64,000 bases of DNA from positions 1 through 64,000 of IMG/VR virus record IMGVR_UViG_3300033182_000674; one strand, written 5' to 3'. Position 1 is the stretch's first letter. The number at the start of each line of letters is the position of its first letter. The notes below the pieces were generated by a model, which worked only from the letters and a program-made list of their open reading frames with translations, was not told the DNA's origin and made no database searches. Positions 2,059 through 35,219 of the stretch are shown in pieces. The position numbers were made by a program, and so were the translations under genes.

Positions 2059-3215
2059 TTGTCAACTACCCTTAATAAGATTGTATCTTCGTTAATTCGC
2101 CCATTAGCTACTGTTGTTTTTGTAGTAAGATTACTCCATTCCTTATTAATTTGCAATGGTGTTTTCTTTAATACAATTTTTAAGAAGTCTTCAGGCTTTC
2201 TAAGTTTAGTTGACCTACTTTGTTCTACATCAATGCCTTGAATAGTTGTACCTTTAACTTCAAGGCCATCTGCTTTAATTGTTACTAATTCAGATAATGT
2301 TCTATTCTTAGTATTGAATACATAGAGTCTAAATGATCCAGGTATCGACATTGGATCAATTGAAGCCAACTTGTATTCGTTATCTTCCTTCTTATATTTA
2401 AGTTTAGCAACTTGTTTATCTGCTGTACGTGGTTTCTTAACACGTGTTTTACGAGTTGCTTTCTTAGCATTAAGGAAGTTATCACAATCATTAATAATTT
2501 CTGTAATGAATGCTAGGAATTTCTTTTGTTGTGGTTTGGACATAAAGGAATAACCTTCAGCCAATTGAGATTGCATATCATCTTGCTGACTTGCAGTTGG
2601 TAGATCAACTAATTCTTGTAAATCAGCTTGTAATGGTGTATATACATCTTTAATGTTTCTTGCCATTTGTGCTGATGCTTCAACTTTTTTCAATTCATTA
2701 AACATTGAAAACTTACCATCATGCTTACCAGCAATAAAGTCATCAATAAGACCTTCTACATTTTCACCAAGATAATCATTTGTTTTCTCTTTTATGATTT
2801 CAGTTGGAGATTTCCGTACTACTTCTGGTGCGTCTTCATCAGAAGTTTCAACATAATTTTCTTCTGCTTTCTTTTTTAGATTTTCTACATACTCATCCCA
2901 AGCACGAGTAAAGTTCCAATTATCAGGTAATGGAAACTCTTTTTTTAACCATAAAATAGAAGAAGCAATCCAAACAGGATGATGGAACATCCACTCAGGA
3001 TTATGTGTGATAAGATATGATGCTTCATTTTTAGGAAAGATCTCCTTAATGTAGTTTTTAATTGTAGTAGAGATTTCTTTATTATCACATTCATTGCGAA
3101 TATAATAATTGAAGTCTTGAAAACTTGTAATAGGCGCTGTTGCCAGACCAGTCTTAGGACGTCTAGCAAAACGCTGTGTTTTCTTTTTCTTAGTTGATAT
3201 AGACTTCAATGACAT
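2055..3215 (-). CDS. Conserved T4-like phage protein of unknown function (386 aa)
   Basis: Long ORF translationally coupled to gp33; C-terminal VFNTKNRTL..KGTTIQG..KLRKPE..GRINEDTILL pattern recalled from marine T4-like phages. Confidence 0.6.
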   Translation of the reverse strand: MSLKSISTKKKKTQRFARRPKTGLATAPITSFQDFNYYIRNECDNKEISTTIKNYIKEIFPKNEASYLITHNPEWMFHHPVWIASSILWLKKEFPLPDNWNFTRAWDEYVENLKKKAEENYVETSDEDAPEVVRKSPTEIIKEKTNDYLGENVEGLIDDFIAGKHDGKFSMFNELKKVEASAQMARNIKDVYTPLQADLQELVDLPTASQQDDMQSQLAEGYSFMSKPQQKKFLAFITEIINDCDNFLNAKKATRKTRVKKPRTADKQVAKLKYKKEDNEYKLASIDPMSIPGSFRLYVFNTKNRTLSELVTIKADGLEVKGTTIQGIDVEQSRSTKLRKPEDFLKIVLKKTPLQINKEWSNLTTKTTVANGRINEDTILLRVVDK

Positions 3216-3275
3216 AAGTATAACTCCACATTCAAAGATATATTATAATATAGTTTCATAACAAAGTAAACAGTT

Positions 3276-3497
3276 TTATACTATTTCGTCTACAATATTT
3301 TCTCGTGACTTAATAATATTAGCATTTTTATCATATAACTCATACTTAGCAGAAGACAATGGCGTAACAATGTGGCCTTTTCCAGTCACATTGGTATGCT
3401 TATGTAATTCCATCTGATTTGTTATGGGATTAATCTTAGTGTATTGACTCAAAACTTGCATATTATATAGATCTGCTGTATTTACATTATCGGTCAT
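3276..3497 (-). CDS. Hypothetical protein (73 aa)
   Basis: ORF in co-oriented gene string, overlaps the upstream gene. Confidence 0.5.
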   Translation of the reverse strand: MTDNVNTADLYNMQVLSQYTKINPITNQMELHKHTNVTGKGHIVTPLSSAKYELYDKNANIIKSRENIVDEIV

Positions 3498-3999: not shown

Positions 4000-4339
4000 A
4001 TAATTTATCTCCAATTAACCAATCAATTTCTAAAATGTTTTCTGGCATTTCACATAAACATTGTAATGTACCACTAGAGTTTTCAACATAATCGTTTAAT
4101 ACTCCACCAGCATATGAACCAAGTTCTCCATAACCTTTTTTATGACATGAATACACTGATCCAGATGTGCCTTTAAATAGATAGTTATCACCTTCTAATT
4201 TGACACTTACAATACCAGAATTCATACGCCATGAATCACCGTCAACAAAACTACCACGCCATGAACCAAAAACTCTATAATGTGGATCAGTACCTGTTAT
4301 CTTAACTAGTACCCAACCATCAGGATTATATTCATTCAT
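3986..4339 (-). CDS. Conserved phage hypothetical protein
   Basis: YNPDGWVLVKI..YRVFGSWRG.F.DGDSWRMNSGI motif; start refined to MNEYNPD. Confidence 0.65.
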   Translation of the reverse strand: MNEYNPDGWVLVKITGTDPHYRVFGSWRGSFVDGDSWRMNSGIVSVKLEGDNYLFKGTSGSVYSCHKKGYGELGSYAGGVLNDYVENSSGTLQCLCEMPENILEIDWLIGDKLYDEV

Positions 4340-4529
4340 TATAACCAATCCTCTTTGATAATACTTTATCGATTGAAATAAGTTGATCTTGACCAAGTGA
4401 CTTTGCAACTTTAGCCATTATACCACTAGTTTCTGTAGATGGTAATGCATCAATTAAAGCTTTGATTGTAACTCTACATGCAGCTAGTTCTCCACGTGCT
4501 TCTGAACATTCAAAAAAATAATCGTCCAT
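4332..4529 (-). CDS. Hypothetical protein (65 aa)
   Basis: GAGG RBS; fits the operon. Confidence 0.55.
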   Translation of the reverse strand: MDDYFFECSEARGELAACRVTIKALIDALPSTETSGIMAKVAKSLGQDQLISIDKVLSKRIGYNE

Positions 4530-4530
4530 A

Positions 4531-4926
4531 TTAACCTCTTCTCATTTTAGAAATTTCTTCAGCTTGTTCTTGATTAATAACAGGTACTGCATTTGATTTG
4601 TGCATTGTCGCAATACCTGTTACTAATGTGCCAGTATATTTACTTGATTCAACTTTACCAGTACAACAACCACCTGCGTCTAAGCTAGGATAATTTGGTG
4701 TTTCTCTACGATAGACACTAGCTGGTTTATAATCATTTGTCTTTGGCTGTGTAGTTTTTACTTTACCATGACAATAATCAATATATTCTTGAAGAGTCAA
4801 TCGTTCATTATGACGATGTTGTTGCTTTAATCGTTTATTAAATTTACGATGCTCAACAATATACTTATCAAGTTGTACTTTAGTTATTTTCATTAAACAA
4901 TAATACCTGTCACTGCTTGACGCCAA
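4531..4926 (-). CDS. Conserved T4-like hypothetical protein
   Basis: C-terminal YTGTLVTGIATMHKSNAVPV motif; true start probably MKITKV. Confidence 0.7.
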   Translation of the reverse strand: MASSSDRYYCLMKITKVQLDKYIVEHRKFNKRLKQQHRHNERLTLQEYIDYCHGKVKTTQPKTNDYKPASVYRRETPNYPSLDAGGCCTGKVESSKYTGTLVTGIATMHKSNAVPVINQEQAEEISKMRRG

Positions 4927-29986: not shown

Positions 29987-30025
29987 TTAAATTTCCTTTC
30001 TCGTTGGAATACATTACTATTTATA

Positions 30026-30283
30026 TCACTTTTGCACGGTGTTAATCATTTCTTCGTACAAAATTTCAACTTCATCCATTTCATTACGAACTTCAGATAA
30101 GTTTTGTTTGTGATAAATGTTTGCAATCTTACGGACATATTTCTTTTCAACATCCAATTCTTCTGAGATGTCATTAATAATATCACGTTGAAGATCTTTT
30201 TCAGAGTCAACTCTTGTCATAGAGTTAGACATTTCAACGACTGCATTATATAGTTTCTTGCGATCTTCAGGACTAGATAGCAT
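30026..30283 (-). CDS. dsbA: T4-like dsDNA-binding protein DsbA
   Basis: VEMSNSMTRVDSEKDL..DI......E...KKYVRKIANIYHKQN. Confidence 0.75.
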   Translation of the reverse strand: MLSSPEDRKKLYNAVVEMSNSMTRVDSEKDLQRDIINDISEELDVEKKYVRKIANIYHKQNLSEVRNEMDEVEILYEEMINTVQK

Positions 30284-30462
30284 TTTTTTCTCCTTTTAAA
30301 GATTGAGGCTTTTGCCGATTGTACGATCTAACTCTTCGAGAGTAACCATATCTTGTTGTTTTTCAAGAACAGTTCTCTTTGGATTTAGATTGAATTTCTT
30401 TTCGAACCAAAAGTTAATAGTATCAAACTGATCTATTAACCATCTAAAAATTTTACGTTTCA

Positions 30463-30837
30463 TTAAAATAATTCTTTTTCAGTTAATACTTTAAATTCAT
30501 ATGATTGTTGATTACACCATTCTTGTGCATACTTCCATTTAGCCTTATTGATATCCCATCGCTTTTGATAATAAGGTTTAATTTCAACTATTATTTTTCT
30601 ATTGTCATATGTTTTAATCACAAAGTCTGGATAATAGTTATGCCACTTTTTATCCTTAGGTGAAACATATGGGATATGTAATTCTTCTGAACTCCATTCA
30701 AGTACTTTAGGACTACGATCACAATATAACATAAATCGTCTTTCCCATAGACTTCTATATGTTATACGATTGATATTACCAGAATATTTTTCTTTATTCT
30801 TTGGTTTATATCTTCCACGAATTGCTGTATTCTTCAT
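30463..30837 (-). CDS. 4: Head completion nuclease gp4 (TnsA-N-like)
   Basis: GRYKPKNKEKY.G....ITYRSLWERRFM.YCD....V.EWSSEE..IPY.SP...HNYYPDF..VEIKP; start refined past the tRNA remnant. Confidence 0.9.
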   Translation of the reverse strand: MKNTAIRGRYKPKNKEKYSGNINRITYRSLWERRFMLYCDRSPKVLEWSSEELHIPYVSPKDKKWHNYYPDFVIKTYDNRKIIVEIKPYYQKRWDINKAKWKYAQEWCNQQSYEFKVLTEKELF

Positions 30838-30841
30838 AATT

Positions 30842-30865
30842 TGGTGGGCCCACAAGGACTTGAAC
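30842..30865 (-). pseudogene. 3' remnant of a split tRNA (T-loop, acceptor 3' strand, ACCA)
   Basis: GTTCAAGTCCTTGTGGGCCCACCA; TGGGCCC pairs with GGGCCTA of the remnant at 31606-31640. Confidence 0.85.
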
Positions 30866-30873
30866 TTAAAAAA

Positions 30874-30950
30874 TGGTGCGCCGTGTCCGATTCGAACGGA
30901 CGACCCCTCCGTTATGAGCGGAACGCTACTGACCACTGAGCTAACGGCGC
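30874..30950 (-). tRNA. tRNA with CAT anticodon, probably Ile2 (lysidine type) rather than Met
   Basis: GCGCCGT/ACGGCGC acceptor, TTCCG-CTCATAA-CGGAG, CCA; C4:G69 and C5:G68 match E. coli TilS determinants. Confidence 0.88.
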
Positions 30951-31561
30951 AATAAATCTTCTATAGTCATATCATCTAACTTGTTTATCAATTTGGAGTC
31001 TATAACTATAAGTGTTTCTGTAAAGTGAGACCATTTTGCTTCATCACGATCCGTTTTGTATCCTTTTACTTCAATATATACATCTTCTTGCGGCAAATAG
31101 AAATCTGGGAAATAAGTTCTTTCGCTGCCATTCCATGTATAAGAGAATCCTTTCGGTTCATTATACCACTTTATATTTTGTTCGTCAAACCATTTAGCAA
31201 CAGTTAATTCCCATTGACCTTTAAGTTTGCAACCGCTATACTCAACGATTTTTACTCTACCACACACATTATTCTTTGTATAAGATTCCGGATGTTTTTT
31301 AACTGCCTTCTGCATTGCTAAAGAATGACAGGCTCGCCTTTCATCATCCCAAGATTGGTTCTTACTCGCTTCAGAAATCTTCTTACGGGTTTCTTCAGAC
31401 ATTTCAGCACCGTATGTATATTGGTTACTACCTTTCTTACCCTTCATTCCATACGAAGGTTTTTTAATCTTCCTGTTTGGATTTGAATGACAGTATACTT
31501 CATGTGCTACATTGCTAGTCTTGGTCTTTGCTTCTCTTCTACAATATTGACAAATAAACAT
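30941..31561 (-). CDS. Free-standing homing-type endonuclease (Zn-finger, NUMOD3-like, PD-(D/E)xK)
   Basis: CxxC..HxxxC N-terminus; MSEETRKKISEA; KGQWE..YFPDFYLP..YIEVKG; GGAGG RBS; stop codon lies inside the tRNA 5' end. Confidence 0.85.
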   Translation of the reverse strand: MFICQYCRREAKTKTSNVAHEVYCHSNPNRKIKKPSYGMKGKKGSNQYTYGAEMSEETRKKISEASKNQSWDDERRACHSLAMQKAVKKHPESYTKNNVCGRVKIVEYSGCKLKGQWELTVAKWFDEQNIKWYNEPKGFSYTWNGSERTYFPDFYLPQEDVYIEVKGYKTDRDEAKWSHFTETLIVIDSKLINKLDDMTIEDLLRR

Positions 31562-31578
31562 ATTAACACCTCCATGTT

Positions 31579-31586
31579 TATTTATA
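31579..31586 (-). promoter_or_regulatory. Late promoter carried by the endonuclease cassette
   Basis: TATAAATA between the tRNA 5' remnant and the endonuclease RBS. Confidence 0.75.
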
Positions 31587-31605
31587 TGCTTATTTATCAT
31601 TTCCA

Positions 31606-31640
31606 GAGTCCACTGCTCTAACCAACTGAGCTATAGGCCC
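31606..31640 (-). pseudogene. 5' remnant of tRNA-Ile2-like gene broken at the anticodon
   Basis: GGGCCTA-TA-GCTC-AGTTGGTTA-GAGC-A-GTGGA-CT-C, then unrelated sequence. Confidence 0.88.
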
Positions 31641-31892
31641 TTAATAGATTCCGTAAACTGATTCTTCTGAAATCAATGCTGCTTGTGAATTATCAACACT
31701 GACTGCTAAAGCATCTCCCCATTTAACCGCAACTTTATCTCCAACTTGTACATCCTTTACATCAGGTCCAATCGCTAAAACAATTCCTGGTTTAGAACCT
31801 GTTTCTGCAGATCCTGTTAATACAATACCAGATTCTGTTGTGGTCTCTGATTTACCTTCTGCTAATAAGATATAGTCTTTTAATGGTTTCAT
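31641..31892 (-). CDS. groES: GroES-type co-chaperonin
   Basis: MKPLKDYILL..ETTTESGIVL...GIVLAIGPDV..V.VGDKV...ISEESVYGI. Confidence 0.88.
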   Translation of the reverse strand: MKPLKDYILLAEGKSETTTESGIVLTGSAETGSKPGIVLAIGPDVKDVQVGDKVAVKWGDALAVSVDNSQAALISEESVYGIY

Positions 31893-32566
31893 AATGTTTC
31901 CTTAAATTGTTCCTTAAATTGGCGTCCCGTAGGACAAAACTTTTTACATTGTTCTATAGATTCTATTATAACAATATTTTTATATTGTGTCAATAGTCTA
32001 TCTAACTTTTTCTTTTGAACTTTTACTGCTTGAGGATTTTTTGGATCTAAAAATAAATCGTAATCTTCAAGATAAAAGTCAGGAAAATAATTGTGTGTTA
32101 CACCTTCTTCATCTATCCAAGGTATAGGATCTGGTCTTACCCACTTAATTTTTAATTCATCTAATCTTTTAGCTAATTCTAATTCCCAAGACGAATCTAA
32201 TAGAATTCCTTTATACTCAACTGTTCCCTTTTTCAATCTTCTATGAGGAGATGCTAATGCTTTTTCTCTTAGAAGTTGTTTTGTCTCTTTAGTGTGCTTT
32301 TTACCTAAAAATGTTCCTGGTTTACCTTTCATTGGTGATTCAGGAACTTCTTTACCATCTAACCTAGCAACGGTATATTGATTTGTTCGGCCAGATTGTC
32401 GTCTGGCTTCATTCATCGCCTCAACATTATTTCTTCCCAAAGCATCAGCATATTCTTTTCTTTTAGGATTTTTATCGCACCATCTAGAATGGTTCGCCAT
32501 CCAGCCGCTTGGTTTATCGGAAATATCAAATTCAGTTTTACAATGTTTGCACTTTCTTATATTCAT
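31889..32566 (-). CDS. Second homing-type endonuclease (Zn-finger, NUMOD3-like, PD-(D)xK)
   Basis: CKHC..H..WC; GKKHTKETKQLLREKAL; DSSWELELAK..YFPDFYL..FLDPKN. Confidence 0.85.
   Translation of the reverse strand: MNIRKCKHCKTEFDISDKPSGWMANHSRWCDKNPKRKEYADALGRNNVEAMNEARRQSGRTNQYTVARLDGKEVPESPMKGKPGTFLGKKHTKETKQLLREKALASPHRRLKKGTVEYKGILLDSSWELELAKRLDELKIKWVRPDPIPWIDEEGVTHNYFPDFYLEDYDLFLDPKNPQAVKVQKKKLDRLLTQYKNIVIIESIEQCKKFCPTGRQFKEQFKETL
31920..31935 (-). pseudogene. Probable decayed tRNA 3' remnant (GTCCTACGGGACGCCA) now read through by the endonuclease ORF
   Basis: Ends GCCA (G discriminator, Arg-like); two nt short of a full T-stem plus acceptor strand. Confidence 0.45.
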
Positions 32567-32585
32567 AATAGTAACCTTTAGTAAT

Positions 32586-32660
32586 TGGCGGGCATACCAG
32601 GATTCGAACCTGGAACGAGGGTTTAGAAGACCCTTGTGATATCCCTTTCACCATATGCCC
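32586..32660 (-). tRNA. tRNA-Arg(TCT)
   Basis: GGGCATA/TATGCCC acceptor, AGGGT-CTTCTAA-ACCCT, CCAGG-TTCGAAT-CCTGG, GCCA. Confidence 0.95.
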
Positions 32661-32670
32661 TTGTTACTAC

Positions 32671-32678
32671 TATTTATA
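32671..32678 (-). promoter_or_regulatory. Late promoter upstream of tRNA-Arg and the endonuclease
   Basis: TATAAATA between the tRNA 5' remnant and the intact tRNA. Confidence 0.75.
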
Positions 32679-32691
32679 TAAACTAAGTTTT

Positions 32692-32719
32692 CTGCTCTAT
32701 CCTACTGAGCTACTGCGAG
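32692..32719 (-). pseudogene. 5' remnant of an Arg-type tRNA
   Basis: CTCGCAG-TA-GCTC-AGTAGGATA-GAGC-AG: complete D-arm with GGA(20), then sequence diverges. Confidence 0.7.
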
Positions 32720-32760
32720 ATTATGATTAATATTATAATACAGAAAATTGTAAATGTAAA

Positions 32761-33381
32761 CTACTTTTTGCCTTTTTTATTCAAAACAACTTCAACATTA
32801 TCTGGTAGTGGTACATGTGAATGACCAGAAGCTGAAGTACTATATAGTACAAATTTTCTATCTTTGAACTCGTTAAACATACCTTTCCAAATAGGTCTCC
32901 AACGAGATGTGAGTCTCTCAGTATTTAAATTATCACGAGAGGATTTCATATATGAATCAGACGAACTGGTAATATCAAATGCAAATATAGAATCAAATCC
33001 ATACATATGAATTTCATCAGCTTTAAGCTTATTCATGATATAATGTGTAGCCATATGACCGCAGTTAAAGTCAGTATAGTTTGGTGCATACTTAGGTAAT
33101 ACAGTATAGAATTCTTTAATTTGATGAGCATGCTTCATGTAAAATGGTGCACGCATTTCCATATACTTCTTAGGTCTAGCTCCAAGTGTCCAATCACCTG
33201 GTACTTCAATAACGCCATCATCAATAGCTTTCATCATTTTAAAATCAACTAGAACAGATGTGTATAATCCTGGAATAGCAAAAGGAGGAATATTACATGC
33301 AACCTTTAATCCTTTCTTTTCACCTTTTAGAAACATTCCCGCTGATTTACCATTTCCAATTAAATGTACAGTCTTAGCCAT
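32761..33381 (-). CDS. Putative glycosyltransferase of the sialyltransferase/Maf-like fold
   Basis: VHLIGNGKS near the N-terminus; GHMATHY...ADEIHMYGFD. Confidence 0.5.
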   Translation of the reverse strand: MAKTVHLIGNGKSAGMFLKGEKKGLKVACNIPPFAIPGLYTSVLVDFKMMKAIDDGVIEVPGDWTLGARPKKYMEMRAPFYMKHAHQIKEFYTVLPKYAPNYTDFNCGHMATHYIMNKLKADEIHMYGFDSIFAFDITSSSDSYMKSSRDNLNTERLTSRWRPIWKGMFNEFKDRKFVLYSTSASGHSHVPLPDNVEVVLNKKGKK

Positions 33382-33386
33382 TTATT

Positions 33387-33935
33387 TTATTCCTTATGTG
33401 TATACCAAATATTATCTGGTCCAATGTTATATCCTAAAATACTTATACCTGACAAATGAGTACTACCAAACTCTTCATCTATTGCCTTTTTAACTTCTGG
33501 CATATCAATATCATGTCCAGATACTAAACCACCTTTTTTAACTTTTGGATACCATGCATGAATATCCTTTTTAACTCCAGCATAACTATGATCAGCGTCA
33601 ATAAATACAAAGTCTAATGAATTATCTTCGATATCATTTGCTGCTAATGCTGTAAAATTTCTAACTATTTTTGCTCTAGGTTTATAATTGTCAGCAAACT
33701 CTAATAAATCTTTATACCAAGGTGCTGGCTCTTTTTCTAATAGTTTTTCTGTAGTAGTGATTCCTTCTGCTTTCCAAATTCTATCATTAAAGAATACATC
33801 TACGCCATATAGTGTTAAATTAGGACAATTTTCAATAAGATGTTTAAATGTTGGTCCACGTAATACACCAAGTTCAGCACCTATTTTATAATCATTATCT
33901 TTTATAATTTTCTCAAGCCATAATTTTCTATTCAC
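33387..33935 (-). CDS. Class I SAM methyltransferase (Methyltransf_24-like)
   Basis: GAELGVLRG, LYGVD, SLDFVFIDADHSY..VKKDI..W..KVKKGG.VSGHD. Confidence 0.88.
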   Translation of the reverse strand: MNRKLWLEKIIKDNDYKIGAELGVLRGPTFKHLIENCPNLTLYGVDVFFNDRIWKAEGITTTEKLLEKEPAPWYKDLLEFADNYKPRAKIVRNFTALAANDIEDNSLDFVFIDADHSYAGVKKDIHAWYPKVKKGGLVSGHDIDMPEVKKAIDEEFGSTHLSGISILGYNIGPDNIWYTHKE

Positions 33936-34594
33936 AATTTGCTCCTAATATATTCTTTACCTTTTGGTCCAGTCCAATGCACTGCTTTCTTCTTATTGCT
34001 GTCTTGACCATCTAATAATTGAATACGTAACCAATTATATTCGTTTGGTACATCATTAATATACATTAATCTTGTTAGAGGATTATTCATCATTGAGTGT
34101 AGAACCTCTTGATCTCCAACCTGTGGATTTTGTTCTACATTATAAGCCCATTGATGTAAAATCTGTGGTGAATCTTTAAAAGCCACAACTCCTGAATTAT
34201 GCCATGTCATACCACGACGTTTAGTCCAAGGCTTATCTTCCACCATTGCTAACTTATTATCTATACAATAATTAAAAACACCTGAGATATCATCCAATAC
34301 TTCGATATCAGTATCTATCCAACATGTATAATTAGCTTTTTTAGAAGCAGTAATCATTGACTTTGGTTTTTTAAACCAACCTTGTTCAGTTAAATGTGAT
34401 AGATCAATTACTTCTGATACTTTAGATTTTTCTAATTTATTTAATGCTTCTTTTGACATACCAAAGTTAGCAACAATCATTGGTGTATCATTATGTTTAA
34501 AATAACCATCTAAAAACCATTCTAGCATCCATTCAGTATTTGTATCGCATCCTGTTAAGAATACTTTATCATACGATGTCATAACCAGTTCCAC
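33932..34594 (-). CDS. GT-A glycosyltransferase (GT8/GT77-like)
   Basis: WFKKP, CWIDTD (DxD), HNSGVV, GDQEVL, YNWLR, HWTG.KGK. Confidence 0.75.
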   Translation of the reverse strand: MELVMTSYDKVFLTGCDTNTEWMLEWFLDGYFKHNDTPMIVANFGMSKEALNKLEKSKVSEVIDLSHLTEQGWFKKPKSMITASKKANYTCWIDTDIEVLDDISGVFNYCIDNKLAMVEDKPWTKRRGMTWHNSGVVAFKDSPQILHQWAYNVEQNPQVGDQEVLHSMMNNPLTRLMYINDVPNEYNWLRIQLLDGQDSNKKKAVHWTGPKGKEYIRSKL

Positions 34595-35219
34595 CTTTCC
34601 AATTGTGTTTTGCTAAACAACCTTCTTCTTTTTGAATTGTAGTAAATGTATCTCTAGCTTCTACTGCCCAAGGATAATATTCTTCAAGCCAAGGGAAATT
34701 ACTTGTATTTAGAAATACATCTGTTGGTCTAGCATCAGTCTTTGCTTTTTCAATAATAGCTTTTGCGCCTAATCTATTTAGCATATAAGCATGAGCACCA
34801 GGTAAATATGGTTTAGACGTTAAAGGATTAACACCAAACATATTAGGTGTATTATATTTACCATATGATGGGTGACCAAATGAAATAAGTTTATTATAAA
34901 CTACAATTTTTGGAATAGGTCCAACAAAATATGCATCATGCTCTAGTATAAGATAATCATCATTATCTTTTGCTGCCATTTCCCATAATGAATAATGAGA
35001 TAAAAATGCTGCAACACAATTTTCTAAACGAGAATACTTCTCATTGAATCCATCTACGGGAATTCCTTTTTCTTCTAATAGCTTTAATGGATTATCTGAT
35101 GGTGTAATAGCTTTAAATATTTGAACATCAATATCATAAGTCTTAGCTGTATCAATACATCTATTTGCAGCCTTCATAGATAATTCATTATCTTCTATAG
35201 CAATAACAAAAGCTTTCAT
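34569..35219 (-). CDS. Glycosyltransferase family 25
   Basis: FKAITP, AAFLSHYSLWE, LILEHDA, GAHAYML. Confidence 0.85.
   Translation of the reverse strand: MKAFVIAIEDNELSMKAANRCIDTAKTYDIDVQIFKAITPSDNPLKLLEEKGIPVDGFNEKYSRLENCVAAFLSHYSLWEMAAKDNDDYLILEHDAYFVGPIPKIVVYNKLISFGHPSYGKYNTPNMFGVNPLTSKPYLPGAHAYMLNRLGAKAIIEKAKTDARPTDVFLNTSNFPWLEEYYPWAVEARDTFTTIQKEEGCLAKHNWKGGTGYDIV

Follow-up and report, generated by a model that had tools for sequence, protein, structure and literature searches.

SegB of phage T4, a free-standing GIY-YIG homing endonuclease encoded in the T4 tRNA cluster and cited alongside F-TflI/II/IV of T5 (PMC2330249), is the closest known system to the locus described in this paper. 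SegB targets tRNA gene DNA, and spreads itself together with neighbouring tRNA genes into nuclease-free relatives. I-Ssp6803I is a PD-(D/E)xK homing endonuclease that belongs to a group I intron in the cyanobacterial tRNA-fMet gene. Collaborative or trans homing has been described for free-standing nucleases beside introns in T4, i.e. mobE/I-TevIII (PMC2790892), and the 'fractured genes' found in marine metagenomes carry a nuclease gene inserted between the halves of a split-intein gene (PMC2677866). In mitochondria, free-standing endonuclease open reading frames (ORFs) bring along a second copy of the terminal part of the gene that they invade, and the original end becomes a pseudogene, e.g. 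in atp6 of Allomyces.

The locus studied here lies in a 64,000-nt stretch of viral DNA, hereafter the window. An 800-bp insert (positions 31893-32692, minus strand) is located inside the tRNA-Arg(TCT) gene of a marine phage, and contains a T4-type late promoter motif, an intact but divergent tRNA-Arg(TCT) and a gene for a 225-aa nuclease (Table 1). We consider it likely that the insert is a mobile free-standing homing-endonuclease cassette, which entered the resident tRNA-Arg(TCT) at the anticodon loop, destroyed this gene, and compensates for the loss with its own tRNA-Arg(TCT); within this reading, the nuclease-made break, the position of the cut, the immunity of the replacement tRNA and the function of the promoter are inferred.

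The locus resembles that of SegB in that a free-standing nuclease gene sits in a phage tRNA cluster, in T4 beside a tRNA-Arg, and in that both nucleases have a NUMOD3 DNA-binding motif. However, SegB has a GIY-YIG domain whereas the window nuclease has a PD-(D/E)xK core; SegB recognises the T-psi-C block shared by the 3' ends of many tRNA genes whereas the window family is tied to a single tRNA species; and SegB sits between genes whereas the window cassette lies inside its target gene, at the anticodon loop, and brings a complete replacement tRNA. With I-Ssp6803I the locus shares a homing enzyme of the PD-(D/E)xK type and an element in a tRNA anticodon loop, but the self-splicing intron restores the tRNA there, whereas the window shows no sign of intron RNA, has lost target nucleotides and relies on a second gene for the restoring; unlike in a precise intron insertion, the exons in the window are incomplete, 50 nt of the tRNA and a 15-nt spacer having been replaced. 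As in mobE/I-TevIII, a free-standing nuclease would spread an adjoining element that makes the target uncuttable, but the protective partner is an intron there, and a replacement gene combined with disruption of the target here. In the 'fractured genes', likewise from marine phage-like DNA, a free-standing endonuclease gene interrupts a host gene, the function of which is rescued; the rescue is by protein trans-splicing of a protein-coding gene, whereas in the window the target is a tRNA and a second gene copy is supplied. The mitochondrial ORFs follow the same 'bring your own copy' logic and leave a remnant behind, but they carry part of a protein gene fused in frame, whereas the window cassette carries an entire tRNA that folds independently and belongs to a different lineage, and does so in phages. 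No paper describing the layout of split tRNA, replacement tRNA and nuclease was found in the full-text literature searched, which does not exclude that one exists elsewhere.

Table 1. Features of the occupied tRNA-Arg(TCT) locus, listed in the direction of transcription (window positions)
Feature	Position	Strand	Basis or remark
Resident tRNA-Arg(TCT) 5' remnant, first 27 nt (acceptor 5' strand, D arm, nt 26)	32693..32719	-	identity to empty alleles; nhmmer
GAAAACTT, relic of a different tRNA-Arg (anticodon stem 5' strand and loop nt 32-34)	32685..32692	-	comparison with L057 and L227
Spacer with T4-type late-promoter motif TATAAATA (motif 32671-32678)	32661..32684	-	directly upstream of replacement tRNA
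Replacement tRNA-Arg(TCT)	32586..32660	-	ARAGORN; Rfam tRNA 63.8 bits
Spacer with nuclease ribosome-binding site AAAGG	32567..32585	-	conserved in L057 and L227
Nuclease gene, 225 aa	31889..32566	-	ORF; absent from empty alleles
Nuclease read-through, last 14 codons	31933-31892	-	stop positions of homologues
tRNA-Arg 3'-end relic GTCCTACGGGACGCCA (T-stem 3' strand, shortened acceptor strand, GCCA)	31920..31935	-	within 3' end of the nuclease ORF
Spacer with tandem duplication (AATTTAAGGAA x2), new groES ribosome-binding site	31893..31919	-	supplants the 15-nt resident spacer
groES-like co-chaperonin gene, resident right-hand flank	31641..31892	-	Pfam Cpn10 E = 1.8e-13

The insertion, its exact boundaries, the existence of both empty and occupied alleles, and the recurrence of the arrangement in other phages are shown by comparison. 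Two empty alleles, L225 and L228, carry an intact 77-nt tRNA-Arg(TCT) between ORF206 and groES (2409-2485 and 841-917, respectively) and no nuclease. L225 is 98.0-99.6% identical to the window across six flanking genes, groES being 99.6% identical, and L228 is 98-99% identical in two flanking genes. The 5' remnant of the window equals nt 1-27 of the tRNA-Arg(TCT) in both alleles without a mismatch; where the window then has 800 nt, the empty alleles have 65, i.e. the remaining 50 nt of the tRNA and the 15-nt spacer. Metagenome contigs from runs X2 and X4 show the identical empty joint, in which the 800 nt are skipped and 65 letters stand instead. In a second occupied allele, L227, the flanks are 92-96% identical to the window, and the order is resident 5' part, GAAAACT, promoter, replacement tRNA, nuclease, resident 3' half and groES; its nuclease is of 214 aa and ends at its own stop, and the resident 3' half is retained with its acceptor strand and the spacer. 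Hence, at one and the same locus the cassette is present in the window and L227, and absent from L225, L228 and the X2 and X4 contigs. In the canonical forms, represented by L227 and L057, the loss of target amounts to about 9-10 nt of the anticodon arm.

The empty site was located by aligning metagenome contigs to the window and by searching for proteins identical to GroES. Megablast and blastn returned no close relative of the locus among GenBank phages, only tRNA pieces and the N-terminal region of the nuclease being matched. Scans of IMG/VR and JGI metagenomes for relatives of the ORF206 protein (<=70% identity) gave no exact empty site; these relatives have a native tRNA-Arg(TCT) 0.9-4.6 kb downstream of ORF206. 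The GroES scan returned a single distant locus, which lacks a tRNA-Arg, and the exact 27-mer of the 5' remnant is absent from IMG/VR.

The 5' remnant, in which the D arm is complete, is severed from the remainder of the resident tRNA-Arg(TCT). Called tRNAs aside, no place in the genome matches an nhmmer profile of native tRNA-Arg(TCT) better than this remnant (model positions 7-35, E = 1.4e-3). Rfam was silent on the remnants because it does not score internal truncations, and it was the custom nhmmer profile that found the 5' remnant. Next to it, the resident gene has ATGGCCTT where the window has GAAAACTT, as the comparison with L225 shows, and the GAAAACT(T) at this place is the same in L057 and L227. 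Since it is identical in L057 and L227, GAAAACTT is not resident and arrived with the cassette.

The 16-nt 3' relic was missed by the native tRNA-Arg nhmmer profile, so that a fuzzy search with a shuffle control was needed. When the 3'-terminal 17 nt from each of 16 native tRNA-Arg genes were searched for with up to 2 edits, the relic was the sole match in the genome (220 kb, both strands), and it is of the L013 type. Block-shuffled genomes gave 0.26 matches each. A match anywhere in the genome is unremarkable; a match exactly where homologous cassettes have the 3' tRNA half is remarkable, the corresponding chance being roughly 1e-4 to 1e-3. The resident 3' end (L225, L227) differs from the relic, which does not stem from the resident tRNA and resembles a tRNA-Arg of another phage (L013 type). 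An internal deletion has removed the variable loop, the 5' part of the T arm and the stop codon of the nuclease. Homologues of the nuclease end 2-3 residues past a conserved ECKxF motif, whereas the window ORF runs on for 14 codons across the relic, to a TGA that overlaps the groES start codon (ATGA). It counts against the homing reading that a tail of 14 residues might impair the nuclease.

The earlier note, made without database searches, had proposed an Arg-type 5' remnant, TATAAATA, a divergent tRNA-Arg(TCT), a nuclease and a 3' relic on the minus strand, as well as a nuclease frame reading through a tRNA-like 3' end. All of these parts are present where it had placed them, and the read-through is confirmed by the 14 extra codons. 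It had also cautioned that the two remnants do not pair cleanly and must be either decayed or from different tRNAs. The second of these is mainly right: they fail to pair because the 3' relic is foreign to the resident tRNA and is, in addition, internally deleted. Finally, it had held that an empty site without a tRNA-Arg would refute the proposal; the empty allele holds an intact tRNA-Arg(TCT), and the proposal survived.

The replacement tRNA-Arg(TCT) has an unusual D arm (GGTGAAAGGGATATCAC) and an encoded CCA. It differs from the resident tRNA in the anticodon stem, D arm and variable loop, while the arginine identity nucleotide A20 and the anticodon are kept, and the 7-nt anticodon loop is identical in the replacement and the target. 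Between the window and L227 its anticodon stem shows a compensatory change of a G-C to an A-T pair, which indicates that the replacement tRNA is under selection. The same tRNA type also adjoins the closest homologues of the nuclease, and the L071 lineage has a replacement tRNA with a canonical D arm and variable loop. The possibility that this tRNA type occurs exclusively with the nuclease was considered and rejected, as it is present alone in 10 IMG/VR contigs. Of 29 nuclease-adjacent tRNA-Arg genes, 17 have an exact TATAAATA motif in the 40 nt that precede them, versus 1 of 16 solo native ones. The window has 16 such motifs, of which 14 are on the coding strand. We infer from the sequence that TATAAATA acts as a late promoter.

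The nuclease gene is situated between tRNA genes in the phage tRNA cluster. Its product comprises a CCHC zinc finger, a NUMOD3-like linker and a PD-(D/E)xK core (E128, D163, D174, K176); these four core residues are invariant in 28 homologues, and so are C6, C9, H26 and C30. The best fold matches of its structure model (pLDDT 86.7) are all PD-(D/E)xK nucleases, namely TnsA, Bax1, RecE, Vsr, I-Bth0305I and T7 endonuclease I, although all are weak (Foldseek, E > 0.01). Its atlas neighbours are viral Zn-finger, NUMOD3 and Phage_endo_I proteins, with PF05367 in 13-69% of members. NUMOD3 reaches only E = 0.017 in the window protein, below the Pfam cut-off, but up to 3.1e-5 in 8 of 28 homologues; PF05367 (Phage_endo_I) reaches 3.9e-5 in 2 of 28, and the window protein itself has no Pfam match at E <= 0.01. 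No GIY-YIG domain was found in it by Pfam or PHROGs, and the family profile gave nothing significant against PDB sequences. From these weak profile and fold matches, the nuclease likely shares a superfamily with Phage_endo_I and TnsA-like PD-(D/E)xK enzymes, but they do not suffice to place it in the family itself. The catalytic residues are intact, and a site-specific DNA endonuclease domain is inferred from the sequence and the weak fold matches alone. It counts against the homing reading that the catalytic fold is as close to junction-resolving and structure-specific enzymes as to known homing enzymes.

The layout of split tRNA, replacement tRNA and nuclease is present in many unrelated phage contigs. 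A tRNA-Arg(TCT) lies on the same strand within 250 nt upstream in 50 of 77 nuclease-homologue loci, and some of the remaining loci have one downstream or antisense; the surrounding tRNA arrays hold 10-30 tRNA species. With detection set above the 99th percentile of 174 control segments, a 5' tRNA half was found just upstream in 11 of 29 unique adjacency loci, and a 3' half at the nuclease stop in 6 of the 29; at least 11 unique loci thus have the split-tRNA arrangement. No 5' half was detectable in the other 18, so many members of the family may merely adjoin a tRNA-Arg. Among 817 tRNAs the halves match tRNA-Arg(TCT) best, and in 7 of 10 HMM-detected pairs of halves the acceptor strands pair 7/7 though their sequences vary between loci. 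This points to the disruption of 10 or more distinct resident tRNA-Arg genes. Among cassettes, DNA similarity sets in at nt 8 of the 5' half and stops within the 3' half, and the sequences beyond are unrelated. All loci share a homologous 5' junction, which falls at nt 33-35 of the anticodon loop, and each lacks about 9-10 nt of the target, namely what remains of this loop and the 3' strand of the stem. Similarity of the nucleases correlates with that of the tRNAs (Mantel r = 0.22, reached in 0 of 2000 permutations), which weighs little because shared descent could yield it. As the loci were gathered by nuclease similarity, these counts are no unbiased survey. It may be mentioned separately that stray tRNA fragments are abundant in phage tRNA arrays.

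A neighbouring cassette in the window, at a tRNA-Met, is built on the same logic, and an empty allele exists for it as well. Further claims of the earlier note concern the relation between the two: that the nucleases are related Zn-finger/NUMOD3/PD-xK proteins, which holds (27% identity, E = 6e-12), and that the order of tRNA and nuclease is reversed relative to the Met cassette, which also holds. Its inference of a separate event is supported by the 27% nuclease identity, by the differing gene order, and by a metagenome contig from X3 in which the Arg cassette is present and the tRNA-Met intact. A recurring strategy, which it had also inferred, is supported by the many unrelated phage contigs and by a Met-type example of the same layout, L220.

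The mechanism that we propose is as follows. The late promoter would drive a single transcript with the replacement tRNA first and the nuclease mRNA behind it. During mixed infection, the nuclease would break the DNA of cassette-free phages within or close to the anticodon arm of their canonical tRNA-Arg(TCT) genes, with the Zn finger and NUMOD3 serving for DNA recognition and the PD-(D/E)xK core for cutting. The cassette-bearing genome would act as the template for repair of the break, and the flanking tRNA halves, chiefly the conserved GGATAGAGCA and GGTTCGAATCC blocks, as short homology arms. The predicted product has the order 5' half, promoter, replacement tRNA, nuclease and 3' half, and its split target could no longer be cut; the replacement tRNA is presumed to be immune through its differing D arm, anticodon stem and variable loop. 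In the window, the left crossover would have fallen within the D arm, so that the resident acceptor strand was kept, while on the right the 3' half that came with the cassette would have been retained and have subsequently lost about 20 nt, the stop codon among them; through this loss the nuclease would now end 14 codons later, overlapping groES. That the target is the tRNA-Arg gene is inferred only from the site of insertion, as there are no cleavage or homing data. Because target and replacement share the anticodon loop, immunity must depend on neighbouring positions, which is unproven, and the canonical D arm and variable loop of the L071 replacement tRNA count against it. Two further points speak against the mechanism: the homology arms measure only about 27-35 nt, which is little for homologous repair, and the right junction of the window lies outside the tRNA and demands an additional, unexplained event.

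Of the rival explanations, passive rearrangement survives best, though we regard it as unlikely. Here, illegitimate recombination or shuffling of the tRNA array would have placed a tRNA-plus-nuclease block, in which the nuclease is cargo, e.g. a junction resolvase, and not the driver. The likeness of the fold to T7 endonuclease I and TnsA-type enzymes, the wealth of stray tRNA fragments in phage arrays, the occurrence of the replacement tRNA type alone in other phages, and the non-homologous right junction of the window all speak for it. Against it, the junction at nt 33-35 recurs in the same tRNA species in at least 10 resident backgrounds whose acceptor halves pair; tRNA-Arg(TCT) is the specific partner of the nuclease family (50 of 77 loci) despite the 10-30 tRNA species per array; the nuclease has a sequence-reading Zn finger and a NUMOD3 typical of homing enzymes; and presence and absence alternate between phages that are 98-99% identical.

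Very unlikely, in our judgement, is a system acting at the RNA level or driven by a benefit, in which the replacement tRNA evades an anticodon nuclease of the host or a rival, or the nuclease cuts tRNA-Arg RNA while the replacement resists, so that the cassette would be an anti-defence or toxin-antidote module instead of, or besides, a selfish DNA element. In its favour are the alterations of the replacement tRNA in the anticodon stem, D arm and variable loop with A20 and the anticodon kept, and the reported link of phage tRNAs and SegB to escape from tRNA-cutting defences (PMC13096335). However, the nuclease contains modules for binding DNA and its fold is that of a DNA nuclease, the actual observation is a DNA-level insertion in the anticodon region of a gene with no RNA evidence, and a benefit from the tRNA leaves the fixed split position of the resident gene in many phages unexplained.

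Two other explanations are all but excluded. In the intron-like one, the tRNA halves would be exons of a functional tRNA-Arg from which the 800 nt are spliced out; group I introns of bacterial and phage tRNAs do sit in the anticodon loop, and in L221 a true group I intron interrupts a tRNA next to which a relative of the neighbouring nuclease is encoded, but a search that detects this intron found none in L057 or L227 at the gathering score, window positions 30000-34000 gave no group I intron even at E values up to 10, about 9-10 nt of target are missing in every locus, the 3' half in the window is mostly deleted, and the insert holds a complete tRNA. An integrase-type island that integrated into the tRNA gene and duplicated part of it as att sites would fit tRNA genes as classic integration sites, but there is no integrase or recombinase gene within the 800 nt, the flanks are complementary non-overlapping halves of one gene without direct repeats, and the replacement tRNA is of a different lineage than the target.

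The homing-cassette reading can be taken further. On balance we lean, by no wide margin, towards a distinct class of homing element, in which a nuclease gene enters a tRNA at the anticodon loop, kills the gene and brings a nuclease-immune replacement tRNA, the dead halves serving as portable homology arms; the class would move between phage families, have sister lineages at tRNA-Met and perhaps tRNA-Leu, and be a main force shaping phage tRNA arrays. Movement between families would be possible because tRNA-Arg(UCU) is among the few sequences common to unrelated phages.

Homing endonuclease genes usually spare their host by an intergenic position or by a self-splicing intron or intein. The cassette would represent a third solution in natural phage populations, which is to wreck the target gene and bring a spare copy, and with empty and occupied alleles available at up to 99.6% identity it is open to direct testing. 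It would account for the stray tRNA halves and duplicated isoacceptors that are common in phage tRNA arrays, and suggests a route by which a selfish element could cross between unrelated phages with only a conserved tRNA as its landing site. Furthermore, it brings to light what looks like a large, as yet unnamed family of compact nucleases, which may read specific tRNA-gene sequences and possibly serve as tools.

The earlier note had claimed, from the sequence alone, that a nuclease cassette splits a tRNA-Arg gene at this locus; its decisive test, the recovery of an empty-site allele, has been run, an intact tRNA-Arg(TCT) was found there, and the claim held. The source contig (219,676 bp, 34% G+C), of which the window is the first 64 kb, was identified by exact protein match as a JGI metagenome contig and appears to be a marine T4-like phage; six tRNA genes are found in the phage genome, and the genes lie on the minus strand. 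The tRNA-Arg(TCT) carried by the cassette, referred to as the replacement tRNA, scores 63.8 bits in Rfam with every stem paired, and the nuclease ORF beside it is 27% identical (E = 6e-12) to a neighbouring nuclease ORF (31600-30941).

Features of the tRNA-Arg locus (window coordinates)
Feature	Coordinates	Strand	Remark
ORF206	33381-32761	minus	first in order of locus
tRNA 5' piece, 27 nt	32719-32693	minus	
GAAAACTT	32692-32685	minus	8 nt beside resident 5' piece
Spacer, 24 nt		minus	with TATAAATA at 32678-32671
tRNA-Arg(TCT)	32660-32586	minus	
Nuclease ORF, 225 aa	32566-31889	minus	
GroES-like gene	31892-31641	minus	
tRNA-end-like 16 bases	31935-31920	minus	within 3' end of 225-aa ORF

Contig sequences from four metagenomes, marine and estuarine, were compared with 30000-35000; in those of runs X2 and X4, the 800 nt between 31892 and 32693 are missing and 65 different nucleotides link these two positions. 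Two further contigs, L225 (25 kb, from a sediment metagenome, with six flanking genes 98.0-99.6% identical to the window) and L228 (a second such contig), were retrieved as DNA through an exact match of the GroES protein. Between ORF206 and groES, both carry an intact 77-nt tRNA-Arg(TCT), whose acceptor strands pair 7/7, and then a 15-nt spacer, the nuclease being absent. The window shares the first 27 nt of this tRNA gene, and the 40 nt preceding it, without a single difference; its 5' piece is therefore the truncated resident gene, and 31893-32692 is the insert. The occupied allele is seen in a cleaner state in the Logan contig L227 (flanks 92-96% identical to the window), where the resident 5' part and GAAAACT precede the same spacer with its putative promoter and a replacement tRNA (97% identity to that of the window). 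Next come a 214-aa nuclease with its own stop codon (87% DNA identity), the 3' half of the resident tRNA (variable loop, T arm and acceptor strand), the resident spacer and groES. In run X1, the metagenome in which most of the stretch is found, contigs covering 30000-35000 stop exactly at the cassette boundaries 30865, 31609/31892 and 32693, and word depth is 0-7 within the Arg cassette versus 12-24 in the flanks; the coexistence of both alleles in the population would be compatible with this, contig depth being a poor measure. L225 also carries at 1152-1727, in the region from a methyltransferase-like gene to ORF206, a 191-aa gene (weak sulfotransferase match) missing in the window, a further indel between ~99%-identical phages.

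The earlier note had warned that the two remnants do not pair cleanly and were either decayed or from different tRNAs; the latter is mainly the case, with a deletion in the 3' relic as well. The acceptor strand of the resident 3' end reads CTGCGAG in L225 and L227; the relic in the window differs from that end, and its match is a tRNA-Arg of the L013 type, from a related lineage of phages. The lack of pairing is thus mainly explained by the separate origins of the two remnants, the left one being from the resident tRNA-Arg gene and the right one from an incoming tRNA-Arg gene. GAAAACTT, too, was brought in by the cassette: it is common to L227 and another occupied locus, L057, and the resident gene has ATGGCCTT at that position. 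Relative to complete 3' halves (L057, L065, L070 and L227), the relic lacks ~20 nt, including the stop codon, variable loop, T-stem 5' strand and T loop, and the nuclease frame has therefore been fused to it: 27 homologues stop 2-3 residues past a conserved ECKxF motif, and the window protein runs on for 14 residues to an ATGA end with groES. We give no detailed explanation of the right junction. The spacer ahead of groES (31893-31919) contains a tandem duplication of AATTTAAGGAA, which stands where the resident allele has 15 nt of spacer with a GGAG ribosome-binding site; translation of groES is probably now coupled to the nuclease via the ATGA overlap.

A native tRNA-Arg(TCT) profile, run against the whole genome, returned only the six real tRNAs and three partial matches: one is the Arg 5' piece (E = 1.4e-3), and the other two are a 5' and a 3' piece on the two sides of the Met cassette, the neighbouring insert. 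The 3' relic is too short for this profile, and a fuzzy search was used instead: the 3'-terminal 17 nt taken from 16 native tRNA-Arg genes, with two edits allowed, matched the genome once, at the relic. As block-shuffled genomes gave 0.26 matches each, the weight of the relic lies in its position at the nuclease gene end, not in the match itself.

The Met cassette (30842-31640, minus strand) follows the same logic in the opposite order. Its empty allele is the intact 77-nt tRNA-Met(CAT) of L225 (2753-2829) and L228; the window retains nt 1-35 (31640-31606) and nt 54-77 (30865-30842), with acceptor strands pairing 7/7, and 740 nt have replaced 18 nt, bringing TATAAATA, a 219-aa nuclease and a different tRNA-Met. 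A metagenome contig of run X3 has the Arg cassette and an intact tRNA-Met, so the two insertions are independent. The Met layout is repeated in another phage (L220). The earlier reading of a separate event and a recurring strategy, based on the reversed order, is supported on both counts.

Only 4 nt separate the resident tRNA-Met from the start of a TnsA-like PD-(D/E)xK nuclease gene (30463-30837, minus); since the empty allele has this gene as well (L225 2834-3208), it is resident and outside either cassette. It has a 41% identical paralogue at ~210 kb of the full phage genome G000 (210002-210406), and its PHROGs family label, 'head closure', is apparently a misnomer. In L221 (2501-3440), a tRNA gene follows a relative of the Met-type nuclease, and a group I intron (3188-3378; RF00028, 61.5 bits in Rfam) interrupts this gene between the halves 3163-3197 and 3400-3440, again at the anticodon loop; here tRNA function would be rescued through splicing rather than by a spare tRNA. 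Outside the window, G000 97691-98064 (minus) holds an ARAGORN permuted tmRNA-like gene with tag peptide ANDDVYGGYALAA, the 3' part of which also scores as a tRNA 3' fragment.

Scanning IMG/VR with the nuclease yielded 80 loci from many environments, on contigs of up to 382 kb. These loci were gathered by nuclease similarity and many are redundant, hence counts are per unique protein where possible; short tRNA halves escape detection. Of the 77 loci with a near-full-length match, 50 have a same-strand tRNA-Arg(TCT) no more than 250 nt upstream, and a few have one just downstream or antisense; one nuclease sub-lineage adjoins tRNA-Leu(TAA) in place of tRNA-Arg. With a general tRNA profile, tRNA halves were detected outside called genes: among 29 unique adjacency loci, 11 have a 5' half (covering about 1-35 of the model) directly upstream of the tRNA and 6 have a 3' half at the nuclease stop, as judged against 174 control segments taken from these loci; 3' halves were also recognized by eye in L066, L068 and L121. 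When compared with 817 tRNAs of every kind, the halves are closest to tRNA-Arg(TCT), and their acceptor strands vary between loci yet pair within a locus, 7/7 in seven of the ten detected pairs. Six aligned cassettes are similar from nt 8 of the 5' half to inside the 3' half and unrelated outside, and the 5' junction is homologous everywhere (anticodon stem, CT(T)(C/A), A-TTTAT, TATAAATA). Such a pattern would be expected if a single ancestral junction had later been carried, time and again, into different resident tRNA-Arg genes through crossovers within the halves. In L070 the resident anticodon stem extends right to the junction, and conversion tracts can therefore be very short.

In L077 (3807-3932), a tRNA-Arg(TCT) has a ~50-nt insertion exactly after nt 34, bearing an anticodon-arm copy (GTGCGAATCTTCTAAGGCAC), with the putative late-promoter motif and a nuclease homologue after it. 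The tRNA still scores 58.5 bits in Rfam across the insertion, which could be a small intron, could be a scar or could serve to protect the target. L066 (3842-4662) has a split tRNA-Arg (acceptor strands GGTTCCG/CGGAACC, 7/7) around the nuclease and a tRNA-like sequence that is aberrant (TCT anticodon, no normal D arm) and uncalled by ARAGORN, perhaps a decaying or unusual replacement tRNA. In the tRNA-Leu(TAA) sub-lineage (L097-L102, L110 and L127, about 4001-4743), the tRNA start is overlapped by the end of the ORF and tRNA 3' fragments lie on either side, which might reflect a switch of target tRNA.

The catalytic site of the nuclease is conserved: E128, D163, D174 and K176, in the order expected for a PD-(D/E)xK site, are invariant in 28 homologues, as are the zinc-finger residues C6, C9, H26 and C30 and an HRRL stretch after the NUMOD3-like segment. 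The AlphaFold model (pLDDT 86.7) is confident save for the linker and read-through tail, and Foldseek gave only weak matches (E > 0.01), the nuclease ones being of the PD-(D/E)xK superfamily (TnsA, Bax1, RecE, Vsr, the homing enzyme I-Bth0305I, T7 endonuclease I and XisH). No Pfam model matched the core; in the 28 members, Pfam found NUMOD3 in 8 and Phage_endo_I in 2. The PHROGs label is 'endonuclease', and in the ESM Atlas its neighbours are dozens of clusters, all viral and most of them without a name, in which zinc fingers, NUMOD3 and Phage_endo_I occur. The zinc-finger (N-terminal) DNA at 32450-32563 is 75-82% identical over ~100 nt to genes of T4-like phages of Escherichia, Klebsiella, Enterobacter, Providencia and Acinetobacter, located in tRNA clusters for Escherichia, Klebsiella and Acinetobacter; in Acinetobacter phage AB-Navy1 (L138 2863-3944), such a gene lies between tRNA-Asn and tRNA-Ser. 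The C-terminal halves of these genes differ, some being annotated HNH. Judged from sequence alone, the shared region might be a module reading tRNA-gene DNA, and the differing halves hint at a tRNA-cluster DNA-binding module swapped between nuclease types.

The replacement tRNA is of a lineage whose D arm is unusual (GGTGAAAGGGATATCAC) and which is also found beside the closest nuclease homologues. That this type is exclusive to the nuclease was ruled out by ten IMG/VR contigs (L230, L231, L234-L236, L238, L239, L241-L243) in which it stands alone, with neither nuclease nor flanking halves. The phage group in which the nuclease first lived therefore probably had it as its ordinary tRNA-Arg, and those ten phages may represent the lineage of origin of the pair. 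The replacement tRNAs of the window and L227 show only two differences, a compensatory pair in the anticodon stem (G28-C42 to A28-T42), which argues that the tRNA is in use and under selection. It differs from canonical targets in the D arm, anticodon stem and variable loop, and not in the 7-nt loop, so immunity to the nuclease is plausible but unproven. TATAAATA is not more frequent in the window than expected by chance (16 versus 12.8); 14 of the 16 are on the coding strand, and it precedes 17/29 nuclease-linked tRNAs versus 1/16 solo native ones. From this bias and conservation, we infer that it is a late promoter.

The proposed mechanism is inferred, without biochemistry: the nuclease would make a break near the anticodon loop, repair would use the tRNA halves as arms, the replacement tRNA would be immune and TATAAATA would act as a late promoter. 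An RNA-level or anti-defence role of the tRNA-nuclease pair seems unlikely; it cannot be excluded, and could coexist with homing. Passive shuffling is also improbable, as it would hardly account for a fixed junction in a single tRNA species in many backgrounds. An intron-like element is all but excluded, since target nucleotides are missing and intron RNA was looked for in 30000-34000, L057 and L227 and was absent, as is an integrase island, which the gene content contradicts.

The nearest system to the proposed homing cassette is T4 SegB, a free-standing GIY-YIG enzyme of the T4 tRNA cluster that abuts tRNA-Arg, cuts the T-psi-C region of relatives' tRNA genes and spreads itself and neighbouring tRNA genes; similar enzymes occur in T5 (PMC2330249). 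SegB has also been linked to tRNA-gene amplification under defence pressure (PMC13096335). Collaborative homing and 'fractured genes' (PMC2677866) are related ideas. The same holds for tRNA homing enzymes carried by introns and for mitochondrial endonuclease ORFs that arrive with a duplicate of a gene's end. No description of the split-tRNA/replacement-tRNA/nuclease layout was found in the full-text literature searched. Free-standing homing nucleases in phage tRNA clusters are already known from SegB, whereas the Arg cassette differs in its catalytic family, its association with a single tRNA, its insertion within the target at the anticodon loop and the presence of a replacement gene.
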